A stretch of 64,000 nucleotides of DNA from Azolla caroliniana (Eukaryota; Plantae; Polypodiophyta). A program made the translations under genes and the position numbers. Of the stretch, positions 7,198 to 53,257 are shown one piece after another (the first letter of the stretch is position 1; each line of letters starts with the position of its first letter). The notes under the pieces were generated by a model. It saw only the letters and a list, made by a program, of their open reading frames with translations, was not told the DNA's origin and did no database searches. The stretch spans positions 12,586,001 to 12,650,000 of the forward strand of contig JBHGNT010000021.1 in assembly GCA_043228905.1 (NCBI GenBank), read 5' to 3'.

Positions 7198-7616
7198 TGT
7201 TACCGGCCGGCAAGGAGTCCAAAATACGGAGTGAAGGAATTAATTAAGTATGGTTGTAAATAAGCATAGTATGGACGGACGGACTGGAAATGGTATGCCG
7301 TTCCAGATCCGGACGGATCCCGAATAGGTGCGATAGGCACCGTTTTGTACTACGGGCCGGAAACCTATTTAAAGGCCCGGACCCCATTGTAATCGCAACG
7401 GATAATTAATAGAGCGTATGGTGTTTATACTTCTGTGTTGATTTCCGTTCTGTAATTACTGTTATATCTTACGCGTGTAATTAACAAAAGCGCTCTAATC
7501 GTGTAACCTACTTAAGTCGGTGTAATCGTTGAGTCATAATCCTATGCCGTAATCACCCTTTGGTGAAGTGTCTCCGTGACACCTTGTGTTAGGCCTTGTC
7601 CGGTCAGAGAACAACA
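7198..7616 (+). repeat. 5' LTR of Gypsy B
   Basis: TGTTACC...ACAACA, direct repeat of 36526-36944. Confidence 0.95.
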
Positions 7617-10600: not shown

Positions 10601-13233
10601 AAGGACGAATCAAAGCCGGTACACATCGCCAAAGAAATGAAGCCGGAAGATAAAGCGGCGATGATCAAACTTCTCACGGAGTTTCGCGACGTATTCGCCT
10701 GGTCATACGAAGACATGCGAGGGCTGGACCCTCAATTATATCAGCATCAGATCCACTTAGGCAAGGACGCGAAACCAGTGGCGCAAAGACGTTACCGAAT
10801 GAACCCCAACTACGCCGCCAAAGTGAAGGAGGAAATCGACAAACTCCTAAGAGTGGGCTTCATCCGGCCGGTAAAGAAAGCGACGTGGCTGAGCCCCATC
10901 GTCGTCGTCCCAAAGAAGAACGGTAAAATCCGCGTGTGTGTAGATGCCGTCGCCGGCCATGAAGTTTATAGCTTTTTAGACGGGTTCAGCGGATACAATC
11001 AAATCCGGATGCACCCTGACGACCAGGAGAAGACCGCGTTCGTAACCGAATGGGGAGTGTTTGTGGCCGTAGTAATGATGTTCGGACTAAAAACGGCACC
11101 AGCAACTTTCCAGCGAATCATCATGGAGATCTTCGGCGAATACATTCCAGCCTTCATGCAGGTTTTCCTGGATGACTTTGCAGTCTATAGCCGGGAAAAA
11201 GACCATTTGCAGCACCTACGGTTATGCCTTGAAAAGTGTAGGTTATACCGGCTAAGCTTAAACCTAGCAAAATGCATCTTTGGGGTTTCAAGTGGAATCT
11301 TACTGGGACACATTGTAAGTAAGGAGGGCATTGCGGTCGACCCGGACAAAGTAAACGCGATACTAGGGGCACCGGCGCCGAAAACGGCCAAAGCACTAAG
11401 CCGATTCTTAGGACAGATCCGGTGGCACAGCCGGATGCTCCGTCACTTGGCTGACTTGGCTACACCATTACACACCGCGGTACATCGGACACCGTTCCAA
11501 TGGACGGATACGGAGGATAAGGCATACAATGCCCTGAAGGTACTTTTGTCGCAAGCACCCGTCGTGCAGCCTCCGGATTGGAGCAAGGAATTTCATGTGT
11601 TCGTTGACGCTTCCGACATTGCTATCGACAGCGCCTTAATGCAACTTACGGAGCCCAAATGGTACCGGCTGGTATATTACGCCAGCCGGAAGCTGTCCCA
11701 AGCGGAGAAGAACTATTCGACTACGGAACGGGAGGCCCTGGGCATGATCTACAGTGTCACAAAGTTTCGTCATTACCTATTGGGAAGGAAGTTCTCCTTT
11801 CATGTGGATCACTCGGCGCTCCTGTACTTAGTGTCCAAGGCGTCCCTGACCGGTAAGTTGGCCCGTTGGACCTTGCTGTTGCAGGAGTTCGAATTCGAGA
11901 TCTTCCACCGGCCTGGAATCCAGCATGCCGTAGCAGACTACCTGAGCCGGTTAGAGTCCGGAGAATCAGGCGACGGAGTATCGGATGAATTCCCGGACGC
12001 AGAGTTATTCCGTATCACCCCGGAAACGGCAGCGGACGACACGGTGGCATCAGAAGATAGGTGGCTGACAAACATGCACCAGTTCCTAAGCACGGGCCTG
12101 CCACCGGAGGAAATGAACCGGGACGAGAGGAAACGACTGGCGGTGCAGAGCCGCAATTTCTGTCTGTTACGGGACACTCTCTACCACAAGGGAGCAGATG
12201 GAATATGGAGACGGGCAGTCCGTAGTGACGAGAAACAAGTAATCTTACGGGAAGCACACTGTGGGGTTGCCGGAGGACACTATGCCGGGGAAGCGATGGC
12301 AAGGAAAGTATGGCAGAGCGGCTTATGGTGGCCCACGACGTTAAAAGACGCCGTCAAGTATGCTAAGGAATGCGACCTATGCCAACGAATGGGCCAGCCT
12401 ACGGAGCAAGCACGGATGCCACACCAACCGGTACTTCCACTAGAGCCATTCCAGAAGTGGGGGTTGGATTTTGTCGGACCGTTCAAGCCATCGGCAATGA
12501 GAACAGGTAATCGTTATGTCATCGTGGCAACAGATTATTGCACTAAATGGGTGGAGGCTAAGGCCTTGAGAGACAACACCGCGTCATCCACAGCAAAATT
12601 CCTGTACGAGAACATTTGGTGCCGATATGGATGTCCGATTGAATTAATCAGCGACCAAGGAGGGCACTTCCTCGGCCAGGTAGTTGAAAGCTTAACAACG
12701 TTCTATGCCGTGGTCCATAAACGGAGCACACCGTACTACCCACAAGCAAACGGGTTAGCAGAGTCAACCAACAAAACGCTCTAGAACATTCTCCGCAAAA
12801 TCGTCAATGAAAACCGGACGGACTGGGATACAAAGCTCCATAGCGCGCTATGGGCGTACCGAACGGCATACAAAACAAGTATCCGGACAACGCCGTTCCG
12901 GTTAGCGTTCGGCTTAGAGGCGGTCGTGCCGGTGGAATTTCAGGTACCAAGCTTACGAATCCAACTACGAGAACGGCTGAATGAAAAGGAGTCGGAGGAA
13001 ATGCGGCTAGCAGCACTATGCGAACTGGAGGAGCAACGGCTGGCCAGCATCCTACACATGGAACTGGAGCAACGACGACGGAAAGCGTTCGTTGACCGTC
13101 ACCGGAAAGGTAATGAAAAGATGTTCGAAATCGGAAAGCCGGTGCTACTATTCCAAACGAGGATGGGCAAGATGCCGGGTAAACTCCGGTTTAGATGGAC
13201 AGGCCCGTATTGGCGGACACGGGAATACAACGG
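7670..13233 (+). pseudogene. gag-pol: Gypsy B Gag-Pol, one reading frame with three nonsense codons, an in-frame RT deletion and 3' truncation
   Basis: ORFs starting 7670, 8954, 9785 and 12926 share a frame; stops at 8942, 9701 and 12782. Three CCHC knuckles, protease VIDGGSG, RT FLDD, RNase H VFVDASD, integrase HHCC and DFVGP/SDQG/E; ends at WTGPYW. Confidence 0.92.
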
Positions 13234-14388
13234 TTGGCATGAATCCTCGGTATTACCTTCTTTCGTAGTTTCACCCTTAGCATTCTTCTCGGCTATCTCT
13301 TCATCGTATTCGTCGGCTTCGACATTCGTTTTCTCTCCGCCACCTTCCGTCTCTTCGGTCTCACGTTGCCTTTCGATCGCAACCGCCGGAGTCTCTGGAA
13401 TCAGTGGTGGGGAAGTCTCGATATGGCAATCCGCCATTGATTCGTCCATAGCCACCTCCGATTCGATTTCGTCTTTTGTGGCTACCTCCTTAATCACATC
13501 CGCTTCACACTCTTTATCTGCATCAATTATGCAAACATCTATTATGCTTACCCCTTTTTGACCCGATGTCTCGGGCACTTGTATCCCGAAATTTCCTTCT
13601 ACACTTGAATTATCGGCCTTATCCTTCGCCATCGTTCTTTCACAAGACGAGTGGGTGTCTTGTTCCACTCTTTCTCCCGTGGTACCATCATGTTGTATTT
13701 CGGCCTTCATATTGGCTTCATCATTTTTCCTCAATCGACCATCCTTCATGGGCCATGTCGTTGTTGACGAGATTCTCAGCTTCCTTTCATCATGTCTTCG
13801 GCATACCCTTTCGACTTTAGCCCAATCCTCGGTAAGGCCGTTCGCACCGTCATCATCTTCGAGTTCGATCCCAATGTCCATCCTTTCTTTCCGATCGATC
13901 GATCTTACGAACATTAAGACTTTATCTTCTCCCACCAATCTTCGTTCCCGCTCCGAGAGTCGAGCAAAACAATGCTCGAACTCTAGGAACGCTTGCGTTG
14001 CACTTCGGTGGGTCTTCTCCGATGCCACCCATTCGTCGAATTCTCGTCGATCTCGTCCCTTCGATCTCTTGTAATCACATGACTCTCGTAAAGCTTCTTC
14101 GAATGATCCCCATGTCGAGTTTTGTTGCCGTATCTTGTGGATTCTCTCTTGTAGCTCATCCGTGGCTACCCGATTGAAGGATGTCACTTGCAATCCTTCC
14201 AGTATCCCACATCGTATCATCTCCGCCTTGTAGTCACGTAGATAGCGTGACACATCGTTTCCGTTGAATTGTCCGTTTCGTTGTACGAGCCGCTTTACTG
14301 CCCCCGTGATCTCCGACATCGCTCGTTGTTCTTGTAGCATCCGCTCGAACATCATCATCATCGTTATCGCCTCTTGTTGATTCTCCAT
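13234..14388 (-). CDS. gag: Gag-like protein of element C with acidic low-complexity tail (truncated)
   Basis: FNGNDVSRYLRDY...EDKVLMFVRSID...IGIELEDDDGANGLTEDW, homologous to the ORFs of D and E; lies directly after the PBS. Confidence 0.72.
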
Positions 14389-15155: not shown

Positions 15156-15221
15156 ACGGACGTGAAAGCAAGGAGCGAAAAGGTACGTAGTGGGCATTTA
15201 AGAGCCGCCACGTTACTTAAT

Positions 15222-15248
15222 GGGTTGAAGCACGCTACGGGGTACCAA
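15222..15248 (+). repeat. Left terminal inverted repeat
   Basis: Inverted match to 28099-28125. Confidence 0.85.
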
Positions 15249-15767
15249 AAAAGTACTGTTTTTGGCCACAAAAATTGTCAGTACTTTCAATACTGTTAGT
15301 ACTGAATAATTCAGAAAAAAAATTAGAGAAAAAGAAAATCGATTTTGGAGAGTGGGGTGACTGTAGTACAAGTGTCATTTACTGTAGAAGGAGTGGGGGG
15401 AACACGTGAGGAGATGTTCTTCCATTTTGGGGGCTATTTTCCCCTCACGTCGATTTTGGCGCTTCCCCTCACGTCGTTTTGGCGATTCCCCTCATACTGT
15501 TCTTCCTCTATCTCTCTGAGCTTTTCATCACAGACATCCATGTCACGTTTCTGATTTTCCTTCAATCTAAATCTCAGACATCCATGTCTGGTTGGAGAGT
15601 TTGAGTTGAGGATTTCTGATTTTTTTAGGGTTTCTGTTTTTGTTAGGTTTCGGTTGAGGTACAGAGACTGTTCTGAGGGTTTAGGTAGCAGCCAATAGTC
15701 ACTTCTTTGACAACGACTTTCGTACTTCCACCGATTGCAGTTGATGTCGTGGTGATTTGGGGCTTTT

Positions 15768-16352
15768 TCCACCAAATCGAGGCGGCATTGGAGGTTCCTT
15801 CCACCAAATCGAGGCGGCATATCCAACGCTCCCTCCACCATTGGAGGTTCCTTCCACCAAATCGAGGCTGCATATCCACGCTCCCTCCACCATTGGAGGT
15901 TCCTTCCACCAAATCGAGGCGGCATATCCAACGCTCCCTCCACCATTGGAGGTTCCTTCCATCCTTTTTTTTATTTTCAGTACTAAAATGTTTCATTTCT
16001 TCATATTTTAGTACTAAATTTTTAGAATTGACATTTGCCATATTTGATATGTAATTCTAATGTTTGAAACAAAATATTTCTCACTTTGCAGGCCACATTT
16101 AAAAACATTTGATTGTGTTTTCTTGGTTGAGTCTATATATCCACGCTCCCTCCACCATTGGAGGTTCCTTCCATCCATTTTTTTCATTTTCAGTACTAAA
16201 ATGTTTCATTTCTTCATATTTCAGTACTAAATTTTTAGAATTGACATTTGCCATATTTGATATGTAATTCTAATGTTTGAAACCGGATTTATTTCTCACT
16301 TTGCAGGCCACATTTAAAAACATTTGATTGTGTTTTCTTGGTTGAGTCTATA
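15768..16352 (+). repeat. Subterminal ~53-bp tandem repeats and a ~215-bp tandem duplication upstream of the transposase
   Basis: CCACCAAATCGAGGCGGCATATCCAACGCTCCCTCCACCATTGGAGGTTCCTT about 3.5 times; ~15930-16140 repeated at ~16141-16352, each copy with a TTTGCAG|G acceptor-like site. Confidence 0.8.
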
Positions 16353-16408
16353 TAACATTAACTACTTTCGCAAGACACTTAATTTTTGTGGATAAATCTA
16401 GTGACCGA

Positions 16409-19400
16409 ATGGGGGTTCCTAACGAGAGTGAGTTGTCAAGTAACTCATGCATATCTGAAAGGACTAAGAGACGAGTGGTTCTTCACATAGTTCGTTATTT
16501 GGTAGAAATAACGAAGAGATTTAGTGAAGAGGATCGTAGGGATATTATTTGTAGAGTGTTACACCATCAAAGTTTGAATGAAGACATGGAGAGAATAAAA
16601 TTTAGGGACCAATGTGTTTCAGAAGAGATTGTGGAGTCTATGAAGTCATCCCTAGACTTAGTGAAAGGTGTAGAGAGCTTAGACAAACTTGCTGCAAAGA
16701 GGGCAGCCCTACACATGGTTGTGAATGGTGTGAGAGAAAAAAAATATAGTGATACTAAAGTTGCCTTAGCCCTGGGTATTCAAAGAAGGAACTTGAGGAA
16801 ACATCGCCGAAATATACACTCAAGCAAATTCAAGTGGCTGGGGTCGGGACGTAGACGACGATGTGATGCCTTATCTCAAGAGATTATTGAGAAAGTGGAT
16901 TCATTTTGGGCCAAAAATACGCGTGTCTCACCAAATAAGAAGGACGTGTGTAGACAACGAATAAGTCAGGGTATGTACCAGATTCACCCTAGACACTTCT
17001 TGGAGATGACAGAGGTATTCCATTTTTTTATATCAATTCACATTCCATAACTTTGTGTTTTGACCAAGTGTATATTAATGTTTGCTATATATATTGGTTG
17101 ATGTAGGCTGAATTGTACATGAACTTTAAAGACCAACATCCAAGCTTGACTGTCGGATTCCGCAAGTTCCAAGGTTTGAAACCATTTTATGTTAGAAAAT
17201 TAAATGAGAGGAATACATGTTGTTGTGTGTACCATGTGAAGATGGACATGTTAAGGGTTTCTGTGAATGCAATGCGTACTGATTCTAAGGGTATACATGG
17301 GGAATTATGTGTCTGCACTTGTGAGATTTGTAGACCAAATGGGGAGGATAATAGGTGTAATGCACGAAACATGACTTATGCATCCGTTTCTGAGCTATGG
17401 AGGTCTTGTGTTTGTGAAAAAGAACCATCGTGTGAGTGGCATCGTCGTACATGTCTATTAAGAACATGTAAGGTTTGTCCGCTACCATTATTTTGTAGGC
17501 AGGAGCTTGATATGGGAAATAGTCATATCGTGAAATGGAAATATTTGGAGTATGTGACTGAAAATATTGGCAAGGGAGTTGTAACTAAGCGTATCAAGGA
17601 AGTATATAAGGAGACATGTGCTGCTACCCTTGTCTCAGAATTTAAGAAACAACTTGGGGAGTTTATTCCACATAACTTCCGGAGTTATTGGCAAAATTCA
17701 CAGTTCAAGGAATGTATTAATAACTTACCAACGGGTGTCATTGTATCCGTTATTGATTTTGCAGAAAACTATACATTTAAAGTTCAAAATGAGGTTCAAT
17801 CAATGCATTGGTACAATGATCAATGTACAATACTTGTACATATTTGCTATTGGAGGCAAGACGGTGAGTTACATAAGAAATCAATATTTTACATTTCAGA
17901 TGATAAAAAGCATGATACACTATTTGTTCAACATTGTTTTAAGCTTCACCATGCAGATTTATTTTCTCTAGGGTTAACCTTTAACCGTCATTGGGTTTGG
18001 TCTGATGGTGCTGCCTCGCAGTTTAAGGCGGCACGATCGTTCTACTTTATCGCCAGGTAATTTTTAATCCATATGTTTAATACTTATCATGCAATGTGTA
18101 AGGAAGTAAATCTTGTGTTAGTGGATGCATACTAATTATGTTTGTAACTATTAACAAACAGTACTAGTCACATCGATGCATACTAATTATGTTTCTAACT
18201 ATTCGAATCTTGCACTTGTGAATGGATGCATGCATACTAATTTTGTTTGTATTATGTTGTACTAAGTAACTTTTAATCCATGTGAAGTGTTCTCCATAGA
18301 CACATTGTACTATGTTGTGTGTTGGTTCTGTACTATGTTGTGTTTACAAAAGGATGTAAAGTACTCATCTTGTACTCATAGTATTGTCCGTCCTTAAGAG
18401 AATTGTACTAAGTATCGATTAATCCATGTGAAGGGTTCTCCATAGACACATTGTACTATGTTGTGTGTTGGTTTTGTACTATGTTGTGTTTACAAAAGGA
18501 TGTAAAGTACTCATCTTGTACTTATAGTATTGTCCGTCCTTAAGAGAATTGTACTAATTATGTTTTAATCCATGTGAAGGGTTCTCCATAGACACATTGT
18601 ACTATGTTGTGTGTTGTATCTGTACTATGTTGTGTTTACAGGAGGATGTAAAGTACTCATCTTGTACTCATAGTATTGTCCGTCCTTAAGAGAATTGTAC
18701 TAATTATGTTTTAATCCATGTGAAGGGTTCTCCATAGACACATTGTACTATGTTGTGTGTTGGTTTTGTACTATGTTGTGTTTACAAAAGGATGTAAAGT
18801 ACTCATCTTGTACTTATAGTATTGTCCGTCCTTAAGAGAATTGTACTAATTATGTTTTAATCCATGTGAAGGGTTCTCCATAGACACATTGTACTATGTT
18901 GTGTGTTGGTTTTGTACTATGTTGTGTTTACAAAAGGATGTAAAGTACTCATCTTGTACTTATAGTATTGTCCGTCCTTAAGAGAATTGTACTAATTATG
19001 TTTTAATCCATGTGAAGGGTTCTCCATAGACACATTGTACTTTGTTGTGTGTCCTATCTGTACTATGTTGTGTTTACAGGAGGATGTAAAGTACTCATCT
19101 TGTACTCATAGTATTGTCCGTCCTTAAGAGAATTGTACTAAGTATCGATTAATCCATGTGAAGGGTTCTCCATAGACACATTGTACTTTGTTGTGTGTCC
19201 TATCTGTACTATGTTGTGTTTACAGGAGGATGTAAAGTACTCATCTTGTACTCATAGTATTGTCCGTCCTTAAGAGAATTGTACTAAGTATCGATTAATC
19301 CATGTGAAGGGTTCTCCATAGACACATTGTACTATGTTGTGTGTTGGTTTTGTACTATGTTGTGTTTACAAAAGGGTGTAAAGTACTCATCTTGTACTTA

Positions 19401-20525
19401 TAGTATTGTCCGTCCTTAAGAGAATTGTACTAATTATGTTTTAATCCATGTGAAGGGTTCTCCATAGACACATTGTACTATGTTGTGTGTTGTATCTGTA
19501 CTATGTTGTGTTTACAGGAGGATATAAAGTACTCATCTTGTACTCATAGTATTGTCCGTCCTTAAGAGAATTGTACTAAATCAGTATTTACTCATGTTGT
19601 ACTCATAGTATTGTACTCATCTTGTACTCACCAAAGCAGGTATTTCTCCTTATTCAATATTCGTATGCAATGGAATTACTTCGGGTCTGGACATGGAAAA
19701 GGAGAGCATGATGGCGCGGGGGCTGTGATCAAACGTGCCCTTACAAGTGAGCAGTTGGATAATAATGGCGCTAAGTTACAAAATGCACATGATGTTGTGC
19801 AGTGGCTAACATGGAAGATGTCAAATGATGGTAAGAACAGATTGTTTGTTGAAGTTCGCGCTGATGAGGTCGATAGAACTAAATCATATGGTTGTAAAAC
19901 CGTGAAAGGGACACGCAGCACCCATTGTGTGTTAGGGTTTAGCCGCAAGGACACAACCCAATTGTTACTCCGTAGTTTATCATGCTTTTGTTCCATGTGT
20001 CTAGATGAAGCTTGGGATAAATGCATCAACCTATCAATCGTGGAGCCCTGGAAGCTGCAGAAGCTTGAGCCTGAACTACAAGATGATATTGAAGAGGATG
20101 TGCATTCAAACGATATTGTATACTACAACCAAAATCAAGACTTGGCAGTTTTATTGGAAGTTGGAGATCATTTTGCAGTGCTCAAATATTCTCAGAATGA
20201 AGATTTAGAAGACTACTACATTGTGGTGTGCAAGCAAGGAAAGACATTATTGAAAGAAGTGGTGAGGGATGGTTGGGGCAACAATTTCAACGTTGGTGAG
20301 TCTGTCGTGTATGGAAACTATTATGCAAAGTTGCCGCAGTGCAAGAACACATATGCATTACTAAAAGAAGCACCCATCGCAATAATCTACGCTGATGCCA
20401 TTCTTGCGATCAAATTCAATATGACTCAAGCAAAGCACAAGGTTAAGGGATACAACACTGTCTACAAGGTCCCCCAAGAGGTTCATGAGCACATATTAGG
20501 GGAGGTCTCTCTATTTAATGCTTGA
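16409..20525 (+). CDS. Sola2-like DDD transposase, 3 exons (16409-17014, 17107-18056, 19640-20525), 813 aa
   Basis: GT-AG introns join in frame with no stops. Cys-rich region (CCCVYH, CVCTCEIC), then IDFAENY...QSMHW...ISDDKKHD...WSDGAASQFK...WNYFGSGHGKGEHDGAGAVIKR...CFCSMC. Confidence 0.85.
18265..19580 (+). repeat. 146-bp tandem repeat, about 9 copies, inside transposase intron 2
   Basis: AATCCATGTGAAG recurs every 146 bp at 18275, 18421, 18567 ... 19443. Confidence 0.93.
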
Positions 20526-21639
20526 AAGTCACCCTATCAATACATTGTACTAGAAAACTGAAAAACATCCACTTGGAGTTCACTATTAATTTTGATGATT
20601 GACAAATGAATTGATATATTTCGTCTTTCTTCCAAAGGGTTTATGCCTCTCAACCACTTGTACTTATCTTTCATAATATATTAGTTGTTATCAACAGGAC
20701 TTGGATTTCTTCATTGCCGATATTGCTCATGTTTCCTGATGTTATTTGAGCATAGGAGTTTTGCAGAGTTGGTGTGTCCTCTGTTGGCACATAAATCTGC
20801 TCTTCTTTTGCTACGAAGAGAAGATTGTTAGTTGAATTCATTAAAGACTTTAATATTGTAAGATTTTCTACTGTAAGTTCATTTTTCAAAGGGGGCGATG
20901 AATTCTGTGAAGACAACAATGAAAATTATTCTCTCAGAATCCTTTTTTGTTTCATGATATGTCCTGTGAAGCCATCTGAGTTTTTACTTCTTGTATATAA
21001 GTCCTGAATATCCAGGCTATGGATTTTAAAGTACAAACCTTCCTTTCCTTAACAAAATAATCCAACTTCTGAAACAATAATTTGTGATAGCTCAAAAAGG
21101 TAAGTGTTTCCTTACTACTGTTAGTGGATGATTCATCCTTTGGGATGATATCATCAAAATATGGCCCACATTGCTTCAACAATTTGCACACATTCTGGTT
21201 ACCGTCCAAATGGGATTGATGAAACAGTCTATACTTCAGGATATCTTCAATAACACCCAATACCCGATATTTTCTATTTCTCATCATCAACACCTAAAAA
21301 CCTAAATTTTCCTAGCAAGCTAAGAAGACTTTCAAGCATTTTATCTACAATAGACTGAAAGACTTTGCGAGGATTAGGAGATGATCTCAAAAAAGAAACA
21401 AAACGTTGTAAAATAAGAATACTTAGATCAAAAAGTATATTCCCATTGTTTTTGATATATGTTGATGAGCAAAATATAGAAGCAATCCTTAAACATGAAC
21501 GTGATTTCACACTGGTATAACTATTTCAGATTCATGAACTGGATTTTTTACATTGGCAATTGAAACAGTATTTTGGTATCCAAATAGTTCAATTTCAGAC
21601 ATCACTAACAACTAAAGTTCAAGTACAATCGAAAGACAA

Positions 21640-24600
21640 TCAGGCACTAGAGGGTAACTTGGCCGATCTTGTAATGCGCTTGTTGTTGGTGCCAGATTTT
21701 TCTGATTTTACATTCTTCTTTATCTTAAAGACTTTAGGTATGAGCTGACTAAGTGGCACTTCATCATCAGAGGCATCAGAGACAGGCGTGGATGCGCGGG
21801 CACCTTGTACTGGTGGCAAGCTTGAGAGAGCAACTATGTTTTCTGCAACTGCAATGCTTGTACACAAATCCACAAAGGTGCTGTCGATAGACAAATTATC
21901 ACTCATCTCCTGAATGCTTGTACTCCTAGCGATCTTTATTGCCCTATCATCATCACCGATGCCTATACACTCGTTCTTATTAGACTCCTGTATGTGGACC
22001 GTGGCAGTAGTCATGGTCAACTCCTCTTGTACGATGGATGTCACCTCATTCTTAAGACAACGTTGTTCGCTCTGAGTACAATCAGGCCCACCTTCATTAG
22101 TAACGTTGTTCACTCTACACTCCTCATGGGATTCTGTACAATCAGGCTTATCTTCAGGGAAAGCGATGTTCTTTCCACGATCCTCATGGGCTTCACAAGA
22201 CACTACTAGCACATTCTCAGTACAATCAAGCTCCTCTTCATTACTAGCAATGTTCTTTCCATGATCCTCATGGGAATCTTTAGATAGTACTAGCACATTA
22301 TCAGTACAATCAGTCTTCTCTTCAGCACTTGCCACATTATCAGTACAATCAGTCTTCTCTTCAGTACTTGCCATATTCTTTCCACACTCTTCATGGGCTT
22401 CAATCTTCTCTTCAGTACTTGCCATATTCTTTCCACACTCATAGGCTTCTTTAGACATAGTGTTGTTTGTACATGCCAGCTGCTCTTCACATATGAATGC
22501 TTCGTTTTTCTCACAATCCTCATGTGTGGAAGATGTGCTTCTAGAGTCTGCCTCCTTGCAAAGGTTAATTTGATTCTGACTCTGATGGGAATCTGATTCT
22601 GCACTTGTGCTCCATGAAGTTCCCGATTCATTTGATTGCAGTTGGGAATCAGACTGCTCTTGTAAACCTAATTAATGGGATTCCAAAGAATATTGGTATG
22701 AACTCACATACTCAAAAGTTTGCAAACAATGAACATAGGGTTTAGGGCCACATTTTTACCTAATGTTACATCGTCATACTGTACAGCCGTAGATACCCCA
22801 TTGCAAGTGGTGGGCTCGGTCATCTTCTCCACAACATCTAGGTGCTCAACAGTGTTGTTATGATCTATAATAACAACAAGAATAGGGTTGTTATGAGCTA
22901 AATCATTGTTTTCAAAGTCTGGCTTTTGACGTGTACCTGGGAGTGTGATAAATTCGTCTTCATGATCAGGTTTTGGACTCGTGTCTCCGTCACCAAATAT
23001 CATTTCATCATCAGCTAGTAACACAAGTACATGGTATTAGACAATGGATTAGGTTGACAATGCTCCAGACAGGTGAGAACTTATATGACTCACCATTGCA
23101 TTCAACTTTGCCTTTCTTGCCGTTTCCATACAACATTCTTGCAGCATTTCTCTTCTTACTGGGCTCTATTTGTAAAGAAACTGCATTTCTCTTCTTAGTG
23201 GGCTCTATTTCTTGATGTTGACCGGAGCTTGGGGAATTTGTTTGTAGAAGCATATGTTCCACTGCTCCAATGGCCCTTCTCATACATTCATCCTCATCAT
23301 AAAAATCATAGGTTATTGGTAATGATGGTCCCTGAACCTTGGAATGTGCAGCAGATATTGAGGGTTTAGGCACAGGGGCTGGTTGTTCCATTACCTTCCC
23401 TGGCGTGGAGTTGCTTGACACTACAACATTCATTGCAAGAAACAAAAAAACCTTGAATGTTAGTACCATCATCTAAAATATATAATGTAGGTCACAAGAG
23501 CTGCTTCCCATTTTACACAATGTACCAGTCATGAACAATGTACTACTCACATAGTTCCTAAATTATTGAACTAGTACTAATAAGGAACATTGTACTGCTC
23601 ACTTAGTTCCCAATTTACACGATTAGTACTAATCATGCACAACATACACAAGTAGTACTAATCATGCACAATATACTACTCACTTAGTTACCAAATTACA
23701 CAAGTACTAATCCCGAAAAATGTACCACTGACTAAGTCAAATTAATAAGTAGTACTAATCTTGAACAATGTACTACTCACTTATTTCCTAAATCACTGAA
23801 CTAGTACTAATCCCGAACAACGTAATGCTCACTTAGTTCCCAATTTACACAAGTAGTACTAATCATGCACAATATACTACTCACTTAGTTAGCAAATTAC
23901 ACAAGGAGTACTAATGCCGAACAACGTAATGCTCACTTAGTTCCCAATTTACACAAGTAGTACTAATCATGCACAATATACTACTCACTTAGTTAGCAAA
24001 TTACACAAGGAGTACTAATCCCGAACAATGTACTGCTCACTTAGTTCCCAATTTACACAAGTAGTACTAATCATGCACAATATACTACTCACTTAGTTAC
24101 CTAATTACACAAGGAGTACTAATCCCGAACAACGTAATGCTCACTTAGTTCCCAATTTACACAAGTAGTACTAATCATGCACAATATACTACTCACTTAG
24201 TTAGCAAATTACACAAGGAGTACTAATCCCGAACAATGTACTGCTCACTTAGTTCCCAATTTACACAAGTAATACTAATCATGCACAATATACTACTCAC
24301 TTAGTTACCAAATTACACAAGGAGTACTAATCCCGAACAATGTACTGCTCACTTAGTTCCCAATTTACACAAGTAGTACTAATCATGCACAATATACTAC
24401 TCACTTAGTTATCAAATTACACAAGGAGTACTAATCCCGAACATTGTACCACTGACTTAGTCAAATTACACAATTAGTACTAATCCTGAACAATGTACTA
24501 CTCAACAATGTACCACTGACTTAGTCAAATCACACAATTAGTACTAATCCTACAAAATGTACTACTCACTTATTTTCTAGATTACTGATCTAGTACTAAT

Positions 24601-26610
24601 AAGGTACAAAACTAGTACTAATAAGGAACAAAGTACTACTCAGTTCCCAAATTACAAAACTAGTATTAATCATGAGCATTGTACTAGTAACTTAGTTCAC
24701 AAAGTACAGAACTAGTACTATTCATGAACCATGTAGTACTTACTAAGTACTAATCCAACAAATGTAGATTGGTATTTTGCACACAAGTAATACTAAACAT
24801 GATATGTCTTCTACACACCTAGTTACATAACTTGTACTAATTACACCAACAGTATTAATCTTGAACAGTATTAGTACTAAACGTGATATGTGTTTGACAC
24901 ACCTCATTTCCAAATTACAATAATTGTACTATTATTCAACAATTTACTATACACCTTGTTCCCAAATTACATTACTAGTACTAATTCCCAAGTTACACAA
25001 ACAATCTTAACAGTCAACAGTGTACTATAAGTATAGTGTTTACTAAACTAATACTAGGCAAGTTGCAATATAGATTGGACGATGTTGTACCTGGTTCCCT
25101 TTTAGTACTACTAATTGTGGAAAATATCCCTTCAACTACACATACCAATTATATATTAAGAGTACTGCCAATACTAACCCACATAATTAGGGTTCCACAT
25201 AATAGTTGTTAGAGATTACACTAAATTTGAAGTATGAATTGTGGCATACACTAGTTCTAGTCCAAATGTTAATTGACATCATATAATACAAACAATAGAA
25301 TAGTAGAGCCACATACCGTACGGGTGTACTTTTAAACCCCAAGCATAGTACCACTCAGCCGCAATTGTAGTTTTACAGTCCATACATGTATTCTCTTTCT
25401 CAAAATGATACTTAGCACATAGCACATGATATGTGTGCAAGCATGGTGTAATCACAACATCCATAGCCTCCAGCTTGAATCCGAGGCCACAAAATATACA
25501 CCTGGAAGATTGCAAACACAAGTTATAATATATTAGTTGCTCACTTATTTATACCAAAGAAGTAGAAATAAATAACTTTTAAAGCCAATACCGTGATATA
25601 GCTATACTAATAATGGTACTTTCTATACCACTTGGGTGCTCAATTACAGATGGACACAAAGTATCAAAACCATTTTGTTTTAAATCCTGCATCAAGCATG
25701 CAAGGTTCTCAGAATGCAACTTTAAGGCTGACAACTTATTATCTATTTCTTCATGTGCATTCCTGCAAGTATCAAGGTCTCTCATCTGTGAACCTAATTG
25801 AGTGCCCATATTGTTTAGCTCTTTCTTCAACTCCTCTTTCAAGACCTCACTTTCTGAATTTTGGATTGTCGATGCAATCCATTCATATGTAGTTTTTATT
25901 GAAGAAAATTTCTTTTCTGCCTGTATCTCAGCTGATTTAACTGCTTCCAAATCAGCAAGTAGTGTTTGTATTCTTGAGCTCATAGAAGCTATGCAACCGG
26001 CCATCATCTGTTCATGCTTTTCAGTCATTGTGGCCCGTACCTTTGCCTCTAGAACTTGGTGGATAGGTGTTATAGCTAGAATATCCACATGAGAGGTTCC
26101 AGATGACTTCAAGCCAGTGTTGGTACTGGAGGACCCTTTGTAATGTTCTGACCGGTGCCGATTAAAATCTTCCCAATTTACGTCAATGCCACCTTGAACT
26201 TCACATGCAAAAGCACGTGCAAAAACAGTACCCACCTCATTGTTAGTGATTTGATTTGTATCATAAACATGTTCGTATCTCGTCTTCAATAAATTCATGT
26301 ATTCCCTCTTCAAACCACTTATGTGGAATCCTCGCCTTGTGTCGGGATGTGCTGACCCCCAGGTTTTTAACAACCACTCTCTCAGCTCTGGATACACGTC
26401 AGGTCGTGCTCGAAGGAAATAATTCCATCCAAGAGGTGTGTCTCGTCTGATGGAGTGGTACATCTTCTTTCTCTGTGTTGATGAATTCATCACCCTTTCT
26501 CTTGTGGGTGTCTTCTTGCTTTCTTTCATGGGTGTCCTTCTTCCTTCCTTCACTGGTGTCTTCACTTTCTCTTTCATCAATGTCTTCTTTATGGGTGTCC
26601 TTCTCGTCAT
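21640..26610 (-). CDS. Transposon cargo gene: coiled-coil + RING-H2 finger + acidic repeat tail, 5 exons (26610-25592, 25501-25317, 23420-23094, 23014-22760, 22667-21640), about 937 aa
   Basis: Four GT-AG introns each join neighbouring ORFs in phase; total 2814 nt with no internal stop. Exon 2 encodes CIFC-x14-CLHTYHVLC-x10-CMDC. Confidence 0.78.
23500..24760 (-). repeat. 104-bp (2 x 52-bp) tandem repeat inside cargo-gene intron 2
   Basis: TCCCGAACA-type anchor at 23811, 23915, 24019, 24123, 24227, 24331 and 24435; decayed copies on both sides; rich in AGTACT. Confidence 0.9.
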
Positions 26611-27159
26611 TGTCCTAGTCAACACAATTCTCAGGGAATGAATATGCATGTACTAGAAGAAAACTCAAGCAATTACCATCAACACATAGCAAATCATCTC
26701 ATTGCATGTACAAACCATGTCAAACAAACAATAACCCTAAATAGTCGGAAAAAAACTCCATTGTAAATCATCATAGCCAACTCCATCATTGTAAATCATT
26801 GTAAATCATCGCATCGCATGTACAAGCCAACTCCATCACATCGTAAAACACACAAGCCAACTCCATCACAAGCCAACGAAAACATTGTAAATCATCATAG
26901 CCAACTCCATCACATCGCACGTACAAGCCATGTCAAACACACAAAAACCCAAAATAGTCGGAAAAACACTCATCCATGTCAAACTCACACAAAATAAAAC
27001 AGATGGACAAGAAACAAGAACAAAACGAAAACATAGCAACTCATCATAGCCAACTCCATTTACGTTGCATGTACAAACATGTCTAACACACAACCACCTC
27101 GATCAAAATATTTTCATACATTTTTAAAAGGAACACAGAGAAACACAGAGAAAACAAAA

Positions 27160-27450
27160 ACACAGAGAATACCTGGAGGTTGTACAACTTGCAGAGGTAC
27201 CAGACCGTGTTGATTTCGACAAACGAGGCTGCTGCAGAGGAGACAAACGAGCATAGACAGAGGAAACAAACGAGCATACAGACAGACAAGAAACATTCAG
27301 AAAAAGAAAACATTGAGTATTGGGCATGCAACACAGAGAATACCTGGAGGTTGTACAACTTGCAGAGGTACTAGACCGTGTTGATTTCGACAAACGAGGC
27401 TGCTGCAGAGGAGAGAAACGAGCATAGACAGAGGAAACAAACGAGCATAC
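27160..27450. repeat. 171-bp tandem duplication upstream of the cargo gene
   Basis: ACCTGGAGGTTGTACAACTTGCAGAGG at 27171 and 27342. Confidence 0.8.
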
Positions 27451-27741
27451 ACAAGGAAGGAAAATCAACAACACATACAACGAGCAGGGGAAACAAAAAT
27501 CTCTGCGTTCAGAGATCGAACCTGGCACAGAGGGGAACACAAGAACAGCTACGCGGGGAAACAGAGCATCGAAGGTGGAGTGAGAGAGAGAAACAGAAAG
27601 AAAGAAAGAAACAGAGCTTTGAAAGAAAAAAACAGAAAGAATCGAAGGTGGAGTGAAAGAAAGAAACAGAGAGATAGACCTGTAATATATATGTCGTCTT
27701 TCTTTAACTTTCTGCCACTGTCTGTCTGACAACTTCGAGAC

Positions 27742-27744
<3 letters not shown>

Positions 27745-27803
<59 letters not shown>

Positions 27804-27852
27804 CCAATTGACACGTTCGACTACCCATACCAGAGAGAGAGAGAGAGAGAGA
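27745..27852. repeat. (GA)n microsatellites
   Basis: Pure GA runs at ~27745-27799 and ~27832-27852. Confidence 0.95.
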
Positions 27853-28098
27853 TACTGAGACTGACCAACTGTCACAATGGATACCTTCTCCAGGTGTGCT
27901 TTCGTACAACTCTACCTAGGAGACTGGGGCAACAATTAATGTATTAAATATGGCCTAGGGACATTTCGAGTGTGACGTACAATATCTTTGTGCATTTGAG
28001 TGTGACGTAATGAATTTGTTTTTTGTTTTTTGAAACTTATTTACAATTTTTAATGTTTATTTTCTTCTTCGATTTAGTACTAAATTTTTGGCCAAAAG

Positions 28099-28125
28099 TT
28101 GGTACACTGTAGCATGCTTCGACCC
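28099..28125 (-). repeat. Right terminal inverted repeat
   Basis: Ends ...GCATGCTTCGACCC, followed by TAAT. Confidence 0.85.
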
Positions 28126-28150
28126 TAATACTAAATTGGTACACGACGTG

Positions 28151-28428
28151 TGTTGGAAGCAATGTCGTCAGTGCGGAAGATCTTGAAGCACTCGATTCCT
28201 GTTTATTCCCTGTGTATGACAGAATGTAGGTCGTTGCACAGAGAGAGAGAGAGAGACACAAAAAGACTCTTTATTTCACAAAGCAATCATACAACAACCA
28301 ACCTCACAAAGAGGTTACAAGGTCACTATATATAGTGACCGACTTAGGGCAACTACCCTTTATGCTAATTACATAAATGGCCGAAACGGGATGGTGTGAA
28401 TACGTCCATTATACACATGTATTCGACA
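28151..28428 (-). repeat. 3' LTR of Copia-2
   Basis: Direct repeat of 33302-33579. Confidence 0.95.
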
Positions 28429-28621
28429 CTCCCCCGTAATGGGCGTATACATGGGTTATCTAAGATTACAGGTATAGACTTAGGTTCTCGGACATATCAG
28501 CTTTGTTCGAGTCGGCAGGATCCGAAGACAGAAGACCGAACTGGTCGGGTCGGAACAGTTGAAGCCGATCATTAAGGAGCTGATGTCGGTTTTCGGGAAC
28601 CATCCTGCTTTGTGTCCGGCT

Positions 28622-31600
28622 CTAACCGGACTGGTTTGTCGTTACGCCCATCTGATGCCGAAGAGACCGAAAACGGTCTGCCGAGAGACATTTGGTCATT
28701 CCATCTGCGACATTATCGGTTGTGGATATTTTCTCTAGACCGATTTTCCCTGAAATGACGCAGTCCCGAACGAAGTGATATCGAACGTCGATATGTTTGG
28801 AGGCGTTGTGGTGAACCGGATTTTTCGACAAGGCAACAGCACCTTGACTGTCGCTGTAGACAACTGGAGCCGAGTCATGTTCGACTTGTCGAAACGTGTG
28901 CGCCAGCCGACCGAGCCACAAAGCTTCTTTTGCTGCGTCGGACGCAGCTACATATTCTGCTTCGGTCGTTGAGGTCGCTGTGCACTCCTGAAGTTTCGAC
29001 TTCCACGAGATTGCTCCATTCCCGAATTTGAAGCAGTATCCGGTTGTTGATTTCCGACTGTCTATACAGCCGGCGAAGTCCGAGTCGGTGTAACCGACTA
29101 CGCCTGAGGTTCGGTTCGGTCCGAAAAGAATGCCATGGTCTTTTGTGCCAGCCAGATATCTGAACACATGCTTGACTGCGTTCCAATGCGATCGGCCAGG
29201 ATTGTGCATAAATCTGCTAACGACTCCTACGGCATGAGAGATGTCAGGCCGTGTCGCGACCATCAGGTACATAAGGGAGCCGACTGCCGGTGCATACGGT
29301 ACCGACTTCATATCTTCCCCCTCCGAACCGGATGTCGGGCAGTCTCGCTGAGAGAGCCGAAGATTCATAGGGAGTGGGGTTGAAGCAGATTTGGCTGATT
29401 GCATGTTGAAGCGTTCCAAGACACGTCCGATATAGTCGGTCTGAGACAAAAAAAGATGTCGTTTATTGCGATGCCGACTAATCTTCATGCCAAGGATGTG
29501 TCGTGCCGGACCGAGGTCCTTCATGGCAAACTTCAACCGCAGTTGCCGAACAAGATCGGCAAGTTCGCCCGCGTGGCGTCCAGAAATTAGCATGTCGTCC
29601 ACGTAAATGATGAGGAAGATGGGTGATCCATCTCGAGCTGTGTTGGTGAAGAGACAATGGTCCTCATCGCTTTTGGAGAAGCCGATTGATTGGATGAAGT
29701 CGTCGAACTTCTTGTACCATTGTCGCGGTGCCTGTTTGAGGCCGTATAGACTCTTCCTGAGTCGGCAGACTAGATGTTCTTGGCCAGTTGCCACGAAGCC
29801 TTTTGGCTGCTCCATATAAATTTCCTCCTCGAGATCACCATGGAGGAAGGCTGTTTTGACATCTAGCTGAATCAGCTCCAAGTTGTCGGCTGCCACGACG
29901 CCGAGCAGAAGACGAAGGGTTGTCATTTTCACCACTGGTGAAAAAATCTCGTCGAAGTCGACGCCATATTCTTGTCGGAAGCCCTTCGCAACTAATCTGG
30001 CCTTGTACTTTGGGGTGGTCGAATCAGACGTCTCTTTTAGTCGATAAACCCACTTGCAAGGAAGAGCACGTCGGTTCCTAGGTAATTCGACCAGATCCCA
30101 AGTCTTGTTTGCCCGGATGGAGTGCATTTCCGACTCCATCGCCAGATGCCAGGTGGCCGAATCGACAGATGTCGATGCTTCTTCGTAAGACGTCGGTTCG
30201 CCGGCGTCGGTGAAGAAAATTCCAGGAGAATACCTCTCCGGAGGTTGCGACAGTCTCTCGGATCGTCGAGGTATGATTGGACTGGTCGCATCGGGTATCG
30301 AGGTCGGATGGTCCGAAACCGAATCATTCGGCTGTGCCGAGTCAGAGTTGTCCGAGTCGGTAGTATAAGGTTCAGCTACCCGTGAAGCTGACCGTGTGTT
30401 GAGAGCGGGGCCTTCTTGAAGGGTCGGCACATCGGAGAATGTTACCCTTCGGACTTCGATCGGTTTTTCGACTGATGGATTCATAGCCGACTCGTTGAAC
30501 ACAACGTCCGAACTTCGAACGATTTGTCTGCATTCGGGGTCCCAGAGTCGGTATCCCATTTCGCCGTCTGATCCATATCCAAGGAAAATGCATTTCCTGG
30601 ACCGAGGTGCAAGTTTTCGGCGATCATCTTTCGGAATGAGGGCGTACGCCTCGCATCCGAAGATCCTCAGCTTGTCGTAATTCGGCTTACTGCCGATCCA
30701 TAGTTCCTGAGGAATTTGAAGTCCTAGAGGTCGACTTGGCGACATATTGATTATGTGTACTGCCGTGAGTAGAGCCTCTGCCCAGAAGCCATCCGACAGT
30801 CCGGAGTGTTGGAGCATGGAAACTATCCTTTCTTGGATTGTCCGATTCATTCGTTCGGCAATCCCGTTTTGCTCCGGACTGTGTGGTGCCGTAAATTCAT
30901 GTCGGATGCCGCGTTGTCGGCAGAATTTGACGAATTCATCGGATTTGAACTCTCCCCCATTGTCTGTCCGAAGGCATTTCAGCTTTCGGTCGGTTTGATT
31001 TTCTACCATAGCGAGCCAATCGGTGAAGATCGAGAAGACACGATCTTTGGTGCGAATTGGATAAGCCCACACCTTTCGAGTCGAATCGTCAATAAAACTG
31101 ACGAAGTAAGAGGCACCGCCTAGAGACTGATGCGGCATTGGGCCACAGACGTCCGAATGGACTAAATCGAGAGGTCTCGTTTCTCTTGGTGCTGATGTCG
31201 GGTGTGATGCGGCTACTTGTTTGCCATACTGGCAATGCTCGCAGAATTGATGGTCCGAGAAGGAGAGTTTGGGGATGTATCCGGCGCTAGATAGGTGCGT
31301 GATGCCGGCCTTGCTGAGGTGTCCTAATCTTCGGTGCCATAATGATGACACAGGAATATCCACCAAAAACAGGTTACCCTCTCTGAGCGTAACATGTAAC
31401 GGATACAGTGAGTGTATCTTGGGTCCTCTAGCAAGCAGGAGGTTCCCCCTGTGGAGTGTCCACCCTCCCGAAGAAAAACCGGCACGAATGCCGTCTTCAT
31501 CTAGTTGTCCGACAGAGATCAATGGCCTTGAGAGCTCGGGTACATGTCGGACATTGTGGAGTACAAGTGTAGAGCCACCTGCAAGGTTGAGCTCTACTGT

Positions 31601-32638
31601 GCCGATTCCGATGATGTCACAGTGTTGCGAGTTGCCGACCCGAACTGAGTCGGAGTGACGGATCGTATATTGCCGAAATTGGGATCGATGAGGAGTCACG
31701 TGAAATGACGCGCCCGAATCTAAGAGCCATGTGCTCGATTCTTCAGTCGTGAGCAGAACTTCTGATCCAACTGGATTTTCTATTGATAGTATATTCGGGT
31801 CGTCCGGTAGTACATCAGCTGAGAAGCTGACGTAATTGATCTCCTCATGCCGGCCACTCTTCTTGTTGTTCTTGTTCTTGAGTGCGCGGCAGTCGGCTTT
31901 GATGTGTCCGGGTTTCTTGCAATAGTTGCAGATTCGGTTATCCCGTGACTGGCTCCGTCTTCGCTGATTGTTCGGCGGCCGTGAGGAATCTCGTCCTCGT
32001 ATGTTCGATCGGTCTGTCGAACCTTGTACTACGTAGGCGTCGTCTGTTGAGTCTTTGGCGAAAGACTTTCTCCGAGCTGCTTCGGTCAGGATTGCGCTCG
32101 TGACTTCGGAGTATTTAACAGCCGTGGTTGACGCGTTGCACACGGTTGTGACGAAAGTTTCCCATGATGGGGGAAGGCTGCTCATGAGTATCATTGCTCT
32201 GAGTTCATCCTCGATTGCCGTCCCCTGTGACGAGATTTGGGAGCTTATGCTTTCGTACTCATTGAGGTGTGCTTGGACCGAGTCGGATTCTTTCATCCGC
32301 AAGTTGTAGAGGCGCCGGATCAGAAACATCTTCGTTGCGGCGACCTTCTTTTCGTAAGTGTCCGACAGTGTTTTCCACAGTTCGAATGCTGTCGTACACG
32401 ATTGCACCGTAAAGTATACCGATTCCGATAGGTGCATCCGGATCGTGGCGCGGACAATTCTGTCCAGCTTCTGCCACTCAATTGGTTTGTATCCTTCTGG
32501 AGGTTCTTCATTTTCGATGGGGTCGATTTGCCCCTTGACTATGAGATAGTCCTGCATTTGTTCCTTCCAGAAGTTGAAGTTCGATCCATCGAACTTTCGT
32601 AGACTCATTTCTGACGAGCCAGATGTTGATGCCATCAA
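28622..32638 (-). CDS. gag-pol: Copia Gag-Pol polyprotein, about 1338 aa
   Basis: CNYCKKPGHIKADC, WLLDSGAS, WHRRLGH, VHSDVCGP/TDNGGEF, QLDVKTAFLHG, IYVDDM, YTDSD, SKHID; uninterrupted. Confidence 0.96.
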   Translation of the reverse strand: MMASTSGSSEMSLRKFDGSNFNFWKEQMQDYLIVKGQIDPIENEEPPEGYKPIEWQKLDRIVRATIRMHLSESVYFTVQSCTTAFELWKTLSDTYEKKVAATKMFLIRRLYNLRMKESDSVQAHLNEYESISSQISSQGTAIEDELRAMILMSSLPPSWETFVTTVCNASTTAVKYSEVTSAILTEAARRKSFAKDSTDDAYVVQGSTDRSNIRGRDSSRPPNNQRRRSQSRDNRICNYCKKPGHIKADCRALKNKNNKKSGRHEEINYVSFSADVLPDDPNILSIENPVGSEVLLTTEESSTWLLDSGASFHVTPHRSQFRQYTIRHSDSVRVGNSQHCDIIGIGTVELNLAGGSTLVLHNVRHVPELSRPLISVGQLDEDGIRAGFSSGGWTLHRGNLLLARGPKIHSLYPLHVTLREGNLFLVDIPVSSLWHRRLGHLSKAGITHLSSAGYIPKLSFSDHQFCEHCQYGKQVAASHPTSAPRETRPLDLVHSDVCGPMPHQSLGGASYFVSFIDDSTRKVWAYPIRTKDRVFSIFTDWLAMVENQTDRKLKCLRTDNGGEFKSDEFVKFCRQRGIRHEFTAPHSPEQNGIAERMNRTIQERIVSMLQHSGLSDGFWAEALLTAVHIINMSPSRPLGLQIPQELWIGSKPNYDKLRIFGCEAYALIPKDDRRKLAPRSRKCIFLGYGSDGEMGYRLWDPECRQIVRSSDVVFNESAMNPSVEKPIEVRRVTFSDVPTLQEGPALNTRSASRVAEPYTTDSDNSDSAQPNDSVSDHPTSIPDATSPIIPRRSERLSQPPERYSPGIFFTDAGEPTSYEEASTSVDSATWHLAMESEMHSIRANKTWDLVELPRNRRALPCKWVYRLKETSDSTTPKYKARLVAKGFRQEYGVDFDEIFSPVVKMTTLRLLLGVVAADNLELIQLDVKTAFLHGDLEEEIYMEQPKGFVATGQEHLVCRLRKSLYGLKQAPRQWYKKFDDFIQSIGFSKSDEDHCLFTNTARDGSPIFLIIYVDDMLISGRHAGELADLVRQLRLKFAMKDLGPARHILGMKISRHRNKRHLFLSQTDYIGRVLERFNMQSAKSASTPLPMNLRLSQRDCPTSGSEGEDMKSVPYAPAVGSLMYLMVATRPDISHAVGVVSRFMHNPGRSHWNAVKHVFRYLAGTKDHGILFGPNRTSGVVGYTDSDFAGCIDSRKSTTGYCFKFGNGAISWKSKLQECTATSTTEAEYVAASDAAKEALWLGRLAHTFRQVEHDSAPVVYSDSQGAVALSKNPVHHNASKHIDVRYHFVRDCVISGKIGLEKISTTDNVADGMTKCLSADRFRSLRHQMGVTTNQSG

Positions 32639-33301
32639 ATTCGGTTTCGGTTGACGAAGCTCGGTTCGGAGTTGACTGTGAACCTTGTTGGAGTGCAGCC
32701 GGTTGGCTCACCCGATATCGTTCTAGTCGGATTTGAACCCGAGTCGGTTCAGCTTCGGAACTTGCTCGAATTGACTCCGGTAACTTGAGGGACAGAACCG
32801 ACTGGTCTTCCCGAGTGTTGCCGAGTCGGAGTGAGCCCGGTTCGCTTCGGATATATGTGCCGAGTACCGATTATTGAAACCGATTATCTGGACCGATTTT
32901 GCTTCGGTTGACTGCAGCGACGAGAGAGATAGATCCAACTGATCCTCTCGAATGTCGATCAGCCTGATGAAGCACGAATTTGGGGTTGTTGTCTTGAGAC
33001 CGATCTGCACCGAGTGGTTACAACGAGCAGCGTTTGGTGACCTCTTCGGATGCCGTTTAACCGAATGGAGCACGATCGTGTCAATGATGCACAAGGGGAT
33101 TTCACCTCGAGCGGTTACGATCACAAGGAACAGAGTACAACCTGAGGGCTTACTCCAAGCAAGAGGATCTAACGCGATGAGGTGCAAACCTCGTTTTTGT
33201 TCTTCTTCTCTCTTTCTTCGAATGACGCAGGAAACCGAGTGCAGAGACGACGGCCGACAGCGGATTGAAGGACCGACTACTGTGCAGGCTCTGATACCAG
33301 A

Positions 33302-33579
33302 TGTTGGAAGCAATGTCGTCAGTGCGGAAGATCTTGAAGCACTCGATTCCTGTTTATTCCCTGTGTATGACAGAATGTAGGTCGTTGCATAGAGAGAGAG
33401 AGAGAGACACAAAAAGACTCTTTATTTCACAAAGCAATCATACAACAACCAACCTCACAAAGAGGTTACAAGGTCACTATATATAGTGACCGACTTAGGG
33501 CAACTACCCTTTATGCTAATTACATAAATGGCCGAAACGGGATGGTGTGAATACGTCCATTATACACATGTATTCGACA
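33302..33579 (-). repeat. 5' LTR of Copia-2
   Basis: Direct repeat of 28151-28428, adjacent to the PBS. Confidence 0.95.
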
Positions 33580-52867: not shown

Positions 52868-52941
<74 letters not shown>

Positions 52942-53190: not shown

Positions 53191-53257
53191 CTCCAAGTAT
53201 CGGTCGATCCTCGATTTGATCCTTCCTGCCGTCTCTTTCACGTCGGGTTCACCAAAA

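Follow-up and report, generated by a model that had tools for sequence, protein, structure and literature searches.

Sola2 is a group of DNA transposons that reportedly goes back to work by Bao, Jurka and Kapitonov in 2009; to our knowledge, the group is known from sequence only and no Sola element has been experimentally shown to move. Among the closest described systems are the two-gene Sola2 elements of dictyostelids, DFa-2 and PPa-1/4/5, which are about 12.9-15 kb in length, with DFa-2 measuring 12,887 bp (Bao & Jurka, 2013; PMC3627910). Conifers carry the group as well: Sola-2 accounts for 0.6% of the Cryptomeria genome (PMC11539532) and is the most abundant DNA transposon group in Cupressus (preprint 10.64898/2026.07.23.736688). 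Here, we consider a 12.9-kb element that occupies positions 15222-28125 of a 64,000-nucleotide stretch of DNA from the fern Azolla caroliniana, referred to below as the window, and that is bounded by 27-bp imperfect inverted ends. We judge it very probable that this element is a complete copy of a two-gene Sola2 family, which was placed by cut-and-paste insertion into a young Gypsy retrotransposon with duplication of the target TAAT.

The borders of the element are sharply defined. The two terminal arms are identical at 23 of 27 places, giving GGG...CCC ends, and a degenerate search with the 27-mer, allowing up to three mismatches across the 64-kb window, matched the two ends of the element and nothing else, where no match was expected by chance. 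The imperfect GGG repeats of 27 bp that a preliminary description of this DNA had claimed are therefore confirmed, as is its 4-bp TAAT duplication (Table 1). The duplication is taken as 4 bp rather than 5 bp because the fifth flanking base differs between the two sides. Joining the flanks at 15221|28126, so that ...TTACTTAAT runs directly into ACTAAATTGG, gives the form that an empty allele would take. The G+C content drops from about 52% in the flanks to 34-42% within the element.

When metagenome contigs were scanned with the outermost 17 bp of the end, 112 matches appeared, the majority being chance occurrences in bacterial contigs. Eleven run through the whole end and beyond it at 95-98% identity, four of these being left ends and seven right ends. 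All 11 start with GGG, the similarity stops exactly at the GGG and the flanks are all different. This uniform stop, together with the differing flanks, identifies the exact terminus and therefore a family with at least 12 insertion sites. The 4-bp flanks of the family ends lean towards AT but follow no strict consensus.

Table 1. Features of the element and its host, in coordinates of the window.
Feature	Position	Strand	Remarks
Left terminal inverted repeat	15222-15248	+	Starts GGG; boundary backed by 4 other left ends, with flanks that differ right before GGG
Right terminal inverted repeat	28099-28125	-	Starts GGG; 7 other right ends with differing flanks
Target-site duplication, left copy	15218-15221		TAAT
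Target-site duplication, right copy	28126-28129		TAAT
5' subterminal region	15252-16354		AGTACT at 15252, 15280, 15298 and 15979-16223; 52/53-bp repeats at 15755-15961; 213-bp duplication at 15924-16354
Transposase exon 1	16409-17014	+	202 codons; open frame; GT donor at 17015; collinear with full-length relatives
Transposase exon 2	17107-18056	+	Cys-rich region; first D (DFAENY, residue 419); second D (WSDG, residue 502)
Transposase exon 3	19640-20525	+	Third D (HGKGEHDG, residue 543); C-terminal domain; TGA at 20523-20525
Array of about ten 146-bp units inside transposase intron 2	18111-19724		One AGTACT and four more GTACT per unit; also in sister copy L053
Array of 52-bp units (about 23643-24566) and neighbouring sites	23573-25161		After the RING exon; each with AGTACTAAT; same cluster place in L115 and L116
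Second gene, first coding exon	25592-26649	-	Basic disordered start, small helical domain and long helical hairpin (predicted model); GT donor at 25591-25590
Second gene, RING-H2 exon	25282-25501	-	AG acceptor at 25503-25502, in frame with the first exon
Second gene, three further conserved coding blocks	23014-23472, 22707-23036, 21643-22671	-	Downstream of the RING exon; acidic, Ser-rich, basic tail; exon borders approximate
Host Gypsy-type LTR retrotransposon	7198-36944	+	LTRs at 7198-7616 and 36526-36944; duplication AGCCC (5 bp)

The transposase gene runs from an ATG at 16409 to a TGA through three open exons on the plus strand, which amount to 2439 nt or 813 codons. The exons were searched, aligned and folded apart, while the frame, the length and the residue numbers come from coordinate arithmetic, which puts both joints in frame; the two introns have GT..AG borders. 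All three exons align collinearly with full-length relatives, which are 721-890 residues long. The stop-free three-exon frame of 813 residues proposed in the preliminary description thus holds, and the DFAENY, WSDG and HGKGEHDG motifs that it listed are all present.

Support for the splicing of this gene comes from public reads, which were matched to positions 16360-18105 (1746 letters, outside the tandem arrays). One contig from run X18 omits 17015-17106, an interval with GT..AG borders, and so gives the joint 17014|17107. A second X18 contig fits the window as far as 18059 and continues with 30 letters that match exon 3 from 19643 with one difference; as the letters GTA are common to both sides, the joint is read as 18056|19640. 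The evidence for the second intron is therefore a loose contig end that runs into exon 3. Since the spliced X18 contigs differ from the window by 1-4%, we attribute them to sister copies. These observations support the gene model and the transcription of the family. In the liverwort Calypogeia fissa (locus L114) the counterpart of exon 2 runs directly into that of exon 3, and no intron separates them where the fern has its second one. It thus seems that the array-bearing intron was either acquired later on the fern side or lost by the liverwort.

A sister contig, L053, spans the left end to exon 2, and exons 1 and 2 are open in it. Compared with the corresponding exons in the window it carries 15 synonymous and ten non-synonymous changes, with a ratio of non-synonymous to synonymous change (pN/pS) of 0.17 and a binomial P against neutrality of 1.5e-5. 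Selection for a working transposase was therefore acting while the lineages of these copies diverged.

The assignment to Sola2 comes from the catalytic core. An exhaustive HMMER search with exon 2 returned 4383 relatives at E<=0.001; the best of these are in the fern Adiantum (58%), the liverwort Calypogeia, the moss Ceratodon and the alga Klebsormidium, followed by animals such as the clam Mya. With Sola-2 reported in conifers and the closest relatives found in ferns, a liverwort, a moss and Klebsormidium, the statement in the preliminary description that Sola2 is a group mainly of animals and protists has to be corrected. The catalytic blocks of the element are IDFAENYTFKVQNEVQSMHW / YISDDKKHD / WSDGAASQFK / WNYFGSGHGKG, and a consensus of 25 relatives has the same blocks. 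In supplement file 5 of Majorek et al. (2014) the printed core rows include Sola1-1_AP (E.10), Sola2-1_HM with the sea-urchin protein XP_003724602 (E.12) and Sola3-1_HM (E.13). There, Sola2-1_HM reads GDFAENYTFVVQDEIQSYHW / FISDDITHD / FTDGCAGQYK / WNFFATSHG and the sea-urchin row of E.12 is similar; the Sola2_DFa-2 transposase has MDFKEN, FWSDGAKHFKS and YHGKSDVD in the same order (PMC3627910, supplement 3). Compared by eye, the element shares the D-D-D blocks of the Sola2-1_HM, XP_003724602 and Sola2_DFa-2 rows, and the Sola1 row E.10 and the Sola3 row E.13 differ from it in every block. The claim of a Sola2 transposase in the preliminary description is upheld by this comparison.

No Pfam domain was found in the transposase exons or in ten full-length relatives, and this includes the domains of CACTA, MULE, hAT, PIF, piggyBac and Transib. 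Sola is without a Pfam model (PMC5751038), so the blank result fits Sola and excludes superfamilies that have such models. A 4-bp target duplication is a feature of Sola elements (PMC10741241; PMC3627910), with AWWT as the target that marks Sola1 (PMC3845634); the TAAT duplicated here does not fit AWWT. The Sola2 reading is thus in agreement with the length of the duplication, the GGG...CCC ends and the absence of a Pfam transposase domain. The preliminary description gave 5'-GRG...CYC-3' as the ends of the Sola2 group, and the GGG...CCC of the element agrees with this. As judged from these sequence features, membership in the Sola2 group is supported.

One relative (P0027) was modelled, with a predicted local distance difference test (pLDDT) score of 80.8. 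In the model the first aspartate is located where strand 266-271 ends, the second after strand 362-367 and the third where helix 413-431 begins. With one residue at a strand end, one right behind the fourth strand and one at the beginning of the helix that follows, this predicted arrangement resembles the RNase H-like layout. A Foldseek search of the Protein Data Bank (PDB) with the model gave only weak rows (E>=0.013), which were mostly RNase H-like (PIWI, terminase nuclease and RNase H).

Two further observations concern Sola2-like sequences elsewhere. The window itself contains a second, decayed Sola2-like transposase of another lineage (45793-46585, 49576-49944 and 54688-54840), which shows 59% identity over the WSDG half, carries a frameshift near 46230 and is split by other insertions; no homologue of the second gene described below adjoins it (45793-54840). 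In Adiantum nelumboides (locus L113, JAKNSL020007561.1) an annotated protein of 1036 residues, P0151, combines parts of a Gypsy polyprotein and of a Sola2 transposase, matching window positions 12065-13234 and also transposase exons 2-3. P0151 is likely to be a gene-model artefact that extends across nested transposons.

The element lies in the 3' part of a Gypsy-type retrotransposon with long terminal repeats (LTRs). The LTR pair differs at four of 419 sites (415 are the same), all four being transitions, which bears out the young Gypsy host with about 4/419 LTR differences reported in the preliminary description. A second, small LTR retrotransposon (28151-33579, duplication ACGTG) sits inside the same host, 25 bp to the right of the Sola2 element, so that the locus comprises three clean nested insertions. 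At 1.3e-8 substitutions per site per year the divergence of the host LTRs corresponds to about 0.37 million years and at slower rates to 0.7-1.2 million years. Because it is nested in the Gypsy host the Sola2 insertion must be younger than this, and the recent insertion that had been suggested earlier is supported in the form of an upper bound. Divergence among the family copies, at 3-5%, exceeds that of the host LTRs and must therefore for the most part be older than this insertion. The small retrotransposon belongs to a 5.4-kb family with two copies in the window (28151-33579 and 58665-64000), in opposite orientation and 99.87% identical; the first of these has 279-bp LTRs with one or two differences. 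That family has been active very recently.

The second gene noted in the preliminary description proved to be a conserved minus-strand gene, convergent with the transposase gene. Its first coding exon lies in a 356-codon minus-strand frame (25579-26649) and has seven homologues, at 96, 90, 62, 60, 60, 60 and 38% identity, with an invariant block. The translation of the next exon presents a complete set of C3H2C3 RING ligands, C-x2-C-x15-C-x-H-x2-H-x2-C-x10-C-x2-C, and the Pfam family zf-RING_2 matches it at 24.1 bits (E 4.5e-5), under the cut-off of 27.3. In contigs L115 and L116, which represent the 60% and 38% lineages, the RING exon again follows the first exon, with an intron of about 80-100 bp between them. 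It is 81% identical in L115, where the pattern of ligands is kept, and 56% identical in L116, where the last spacer is longer. The three coding blocks further downstream are collinear in L115 at 46, 35 and 30% identity and have no Pfam or PDB match. The same order of exons in L115 and L116 points to one conserved multi-exon gene that belongs to the family and is convergent with the transposase gene.

From its sequence, the second gene is predicted to encode a protein with a helical domain, a coiled coil and a RING-H2 finger. Foldseek comparison of the first-exon model with the PDB returned coiled coils only, sequence searches of the PDB with the accessory blocks were blank and a Protein Atlas search with the first exon gave no usable match. 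None of the minus-strand blocks has a Pfam match to a plant mobile domain or to an NIF/FCP1 phosphatase domain, although such a domain may lie in further exons. Nothing relevant emerged when the literature was searched for Sola elements with a RING accessory gene. Upstream of the second gene, the 3' subterminal region at 27737-27860 holds a long (GA)n microsatellite and purine-rich repeats, and this region is also present in the sister copies L001, L045 and L088.

We were struck by the abundance of the palindrome AGTACT, mostly in the context AGTACTAA. The element has 50 sites against 4.3 expected, an approximately 12-fold excess for which 200 shuffles gave a maximum of nine; the other 51 kb of the window have ten. 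Apart from the two large arrays, sites stand near both termini, with one at 28076 on the right and several on the left (Table 1). Tandem repetition alone could account for the counts in this copy. Clusters also occur in relatives. L115 (14 sites, 1661-2356 of that contig) and L116 each have one shortly behind the RING exon, the Adiantum locus L113 has one (10790-10916) that separates the parts resembling exons 2 and 3, and in L114 the sites surround the liverwort transposase gene (55 sites against 7.3 expected; 9611-9671, 13070-13479 and 18065-18352). In these relatives the spacing is irregular, the spacers are others and the surrounding DNA cannot be aligned. The arrays are putative binding sites, either of the transposase or of the RING protein. 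That a liverwort Sola2 locus has AGTACT arrays and so far no RING gene suggests that the motif is old.

Taken together, these features lead us to the following working model. The transposase would adopt an RNase H-like fold with D419, D502 and D543 on the first strand, after the fourth strand and in the helix that follows, respectively. It would bind the element ends, probably through the AGTACT sites, and then cut and rejoin the element. The RING protein would be a helper owned by the family, with a ubiquitin-ligase-like activity that may serve transposition or counter silencing by the host. It is plausible that this copy is autonomous.

Several points weigh against the conclusion that the element is a complete copy of a two-gene Sola2 family inserted by cut and paste. 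The Sola2 label was assigned by eye on printed rows and a family consensus, and Foldseek gave no significant PDB match for the model of either the transposase relative or the accessory protein. The search for other copies yielded the 11 further ends with differing flanks but no contig with both ends of another copy; the 4-bp duplication is thus verified in this copy alone and none other can be read. The transcript evidence is likewise divided: both predicted splice joints were recovered in contigs of the family, but these are 96-99% identical and not provably derived from this copy, and it is a guess that run X18, which also contains an unspliced piece, is RNA. From three polyA RNA runs that carry the same species label came zero, zero and two reads, with no control for the presence of the plant. 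The ends of this copy depart from the usual family ends at four of 54 places, two of these being CpG transitions, and the four changes might weaken binding. We saw no sign of excision, of an empty site or of a polymorphic insertion, although the stretch to which reads were matched (16360-18105) allowed no test for an empty site; the mobility of the element is therefore conjectural. No homologue of the accessory gene was found within 10 kb of the Sola2 transposase at one Adiantum and one liverwort locus; the same two loci show no convincing ends with a 4-bp duplication.

Some of these points would be explained if the copy were intact but a dead or fully silenced relic, for example through the four changed end positions or through host methylation. 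The departures from the family norm, two of them of the CpG type, the almost empty polyA runs and the lack of an observed empty site or polymorphism all suit such an explanation. Against it stand several facts: the transposase exons are all open, as are the first exon and the RING exon of the accessory gene; the catalytic triad is present; the host element, which the insertion postdates, has LTRs with 99% identity; and family transcripts are spliced. We regard a relic as a real possibility, though one that we do not expect to be borne out.

A different question is whether the second gene and the arrays matter to the element at all. The gene could be a passenger, a captured fragment of a host gene without a role, and the AGTACT arrays ordinary satellite-like expansions. 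The Adiantum and liverwort loci just mentioned lack an accessory homologue near the Sola2 transposase, the arrays in this copy are plain tandem repeats that multiply whatever motif they contain, and Sola2 elements elsewhere carry unrelated cargo such as Fanzor1. Such an origin seems unlikely to us: even where protein identity is down to 60% and 38%, the first exon, intron and RING exon still form a unit in which some blocks are invariant and none of the eight RING ligands is lost. Diverged fern lineages and a liverwort element, moreover, carry AGTACT clusters at the same positions, irregularly spaced and with other spacers, and the motif also stands next to both ends of the element itself.

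Membership in another superfamily (Sola1, Sola3, Zator, CACTA or similar), with a mistaken Sola2 label, draws on the absence of a tree and on Sola1 rather than Sola2 being the usual citation for mosses, but it is largely refuted already and highly improbable, as the printed Sola1 and Sola3 core rows carry other blocks, the Sola2 rows fit block by block and none of the CACTA, MULE, hAT, PIF, piggyBac or Transib domains is matched.

We therefore retain the interpretation of a complete two-gene Sola2 copy, cut and pasted into a young Gypsy host, and consider what it offers. The copy is intact, with defined ends, a supported gene model, evidence of selection on the transposase and an age of less than about one million years, and this makes it a concrete basis on which a transposition assay could be set up. 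Should a Sola2 element be shown to work, this one is a good candidate to be the first, and it might also become a new plant gene-transfer tool. Judging by the RING-H2 gene and the motif arrays, plant Sola2 elements would bring their own helper system, a point of relevance to the persistence of large DNA transposons in fern genomes, which are very large and heavily methylated. A bolder proposal, which we offer only tentatively and consider doubtful, is that this is an active fern Sola2 family that needs a D-D-D transposase, a RING-H2 ubiquitin-ligase-like helper and AGTACTAA arrays to be inherited together, with the arrays recruiting one of the two proteins. If true, this would for the first time make a Sola element experimentally tractable and would provide a case of a transposon equipped with a ubiquitin ligase of its own.

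It is useful to set the element against the systems that it most resembles. The core is nearly letter for letter that of Sola2-1_HM and the E.12 rows (DFAENYTF.VQ.E.QS.HW; ISDD..HD; [ST]DG...[QF][YK]; W.[FY]F...HG), and the 4-bp duplication, the inverted ends and the absence of a Pfam domain are also held in common. The element differs from these in its fern-like host, its length of 12.9 kb, the two introns of the transposase gene, the RING-H2 gene, the AGTACT arrays and the TAAT target. In the accessible parts of the conifer reports the group is, as here, present in land plants, and abundant; these parts give RepeatMasker class totals and nothing on structure, a second gene, ends or activity.

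In En/Spm (CACTA) and Ac/Ds, short transposase-binding motifs are repeated in the subterminal regions, and En/Spm uses two element-encoded proteins. The present element likewise has short subterminal motifs and, like En/Spm, would encode two proteins. Unlike these systems it has an unrelated transposase, the motif is also found in large internal arrays inside introns and binding is proposed from the sequence pattern.

The dictyostelid elements DFa-2 and PPa-1/4/5 share with it a Sola2 transposase accompanied by a second large gene, short imperfect inverted ends and AT-rich 4-bp duplications. In these elements the second gene is Fanzor1 (TnpB-like), whereas here it is predicted to encode a helical, coiled-coil and RING-H2 protein, and their duplications are AWWT-like in contrast to the TAAT of the fern element. 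Sola2 in land plants and two-gene Sola2 elements of the same size in dictyostelids are thus already known, while neither the RING-H2 gene nor the AGTACT arrays are described in the literature that we searched on Sola elements.

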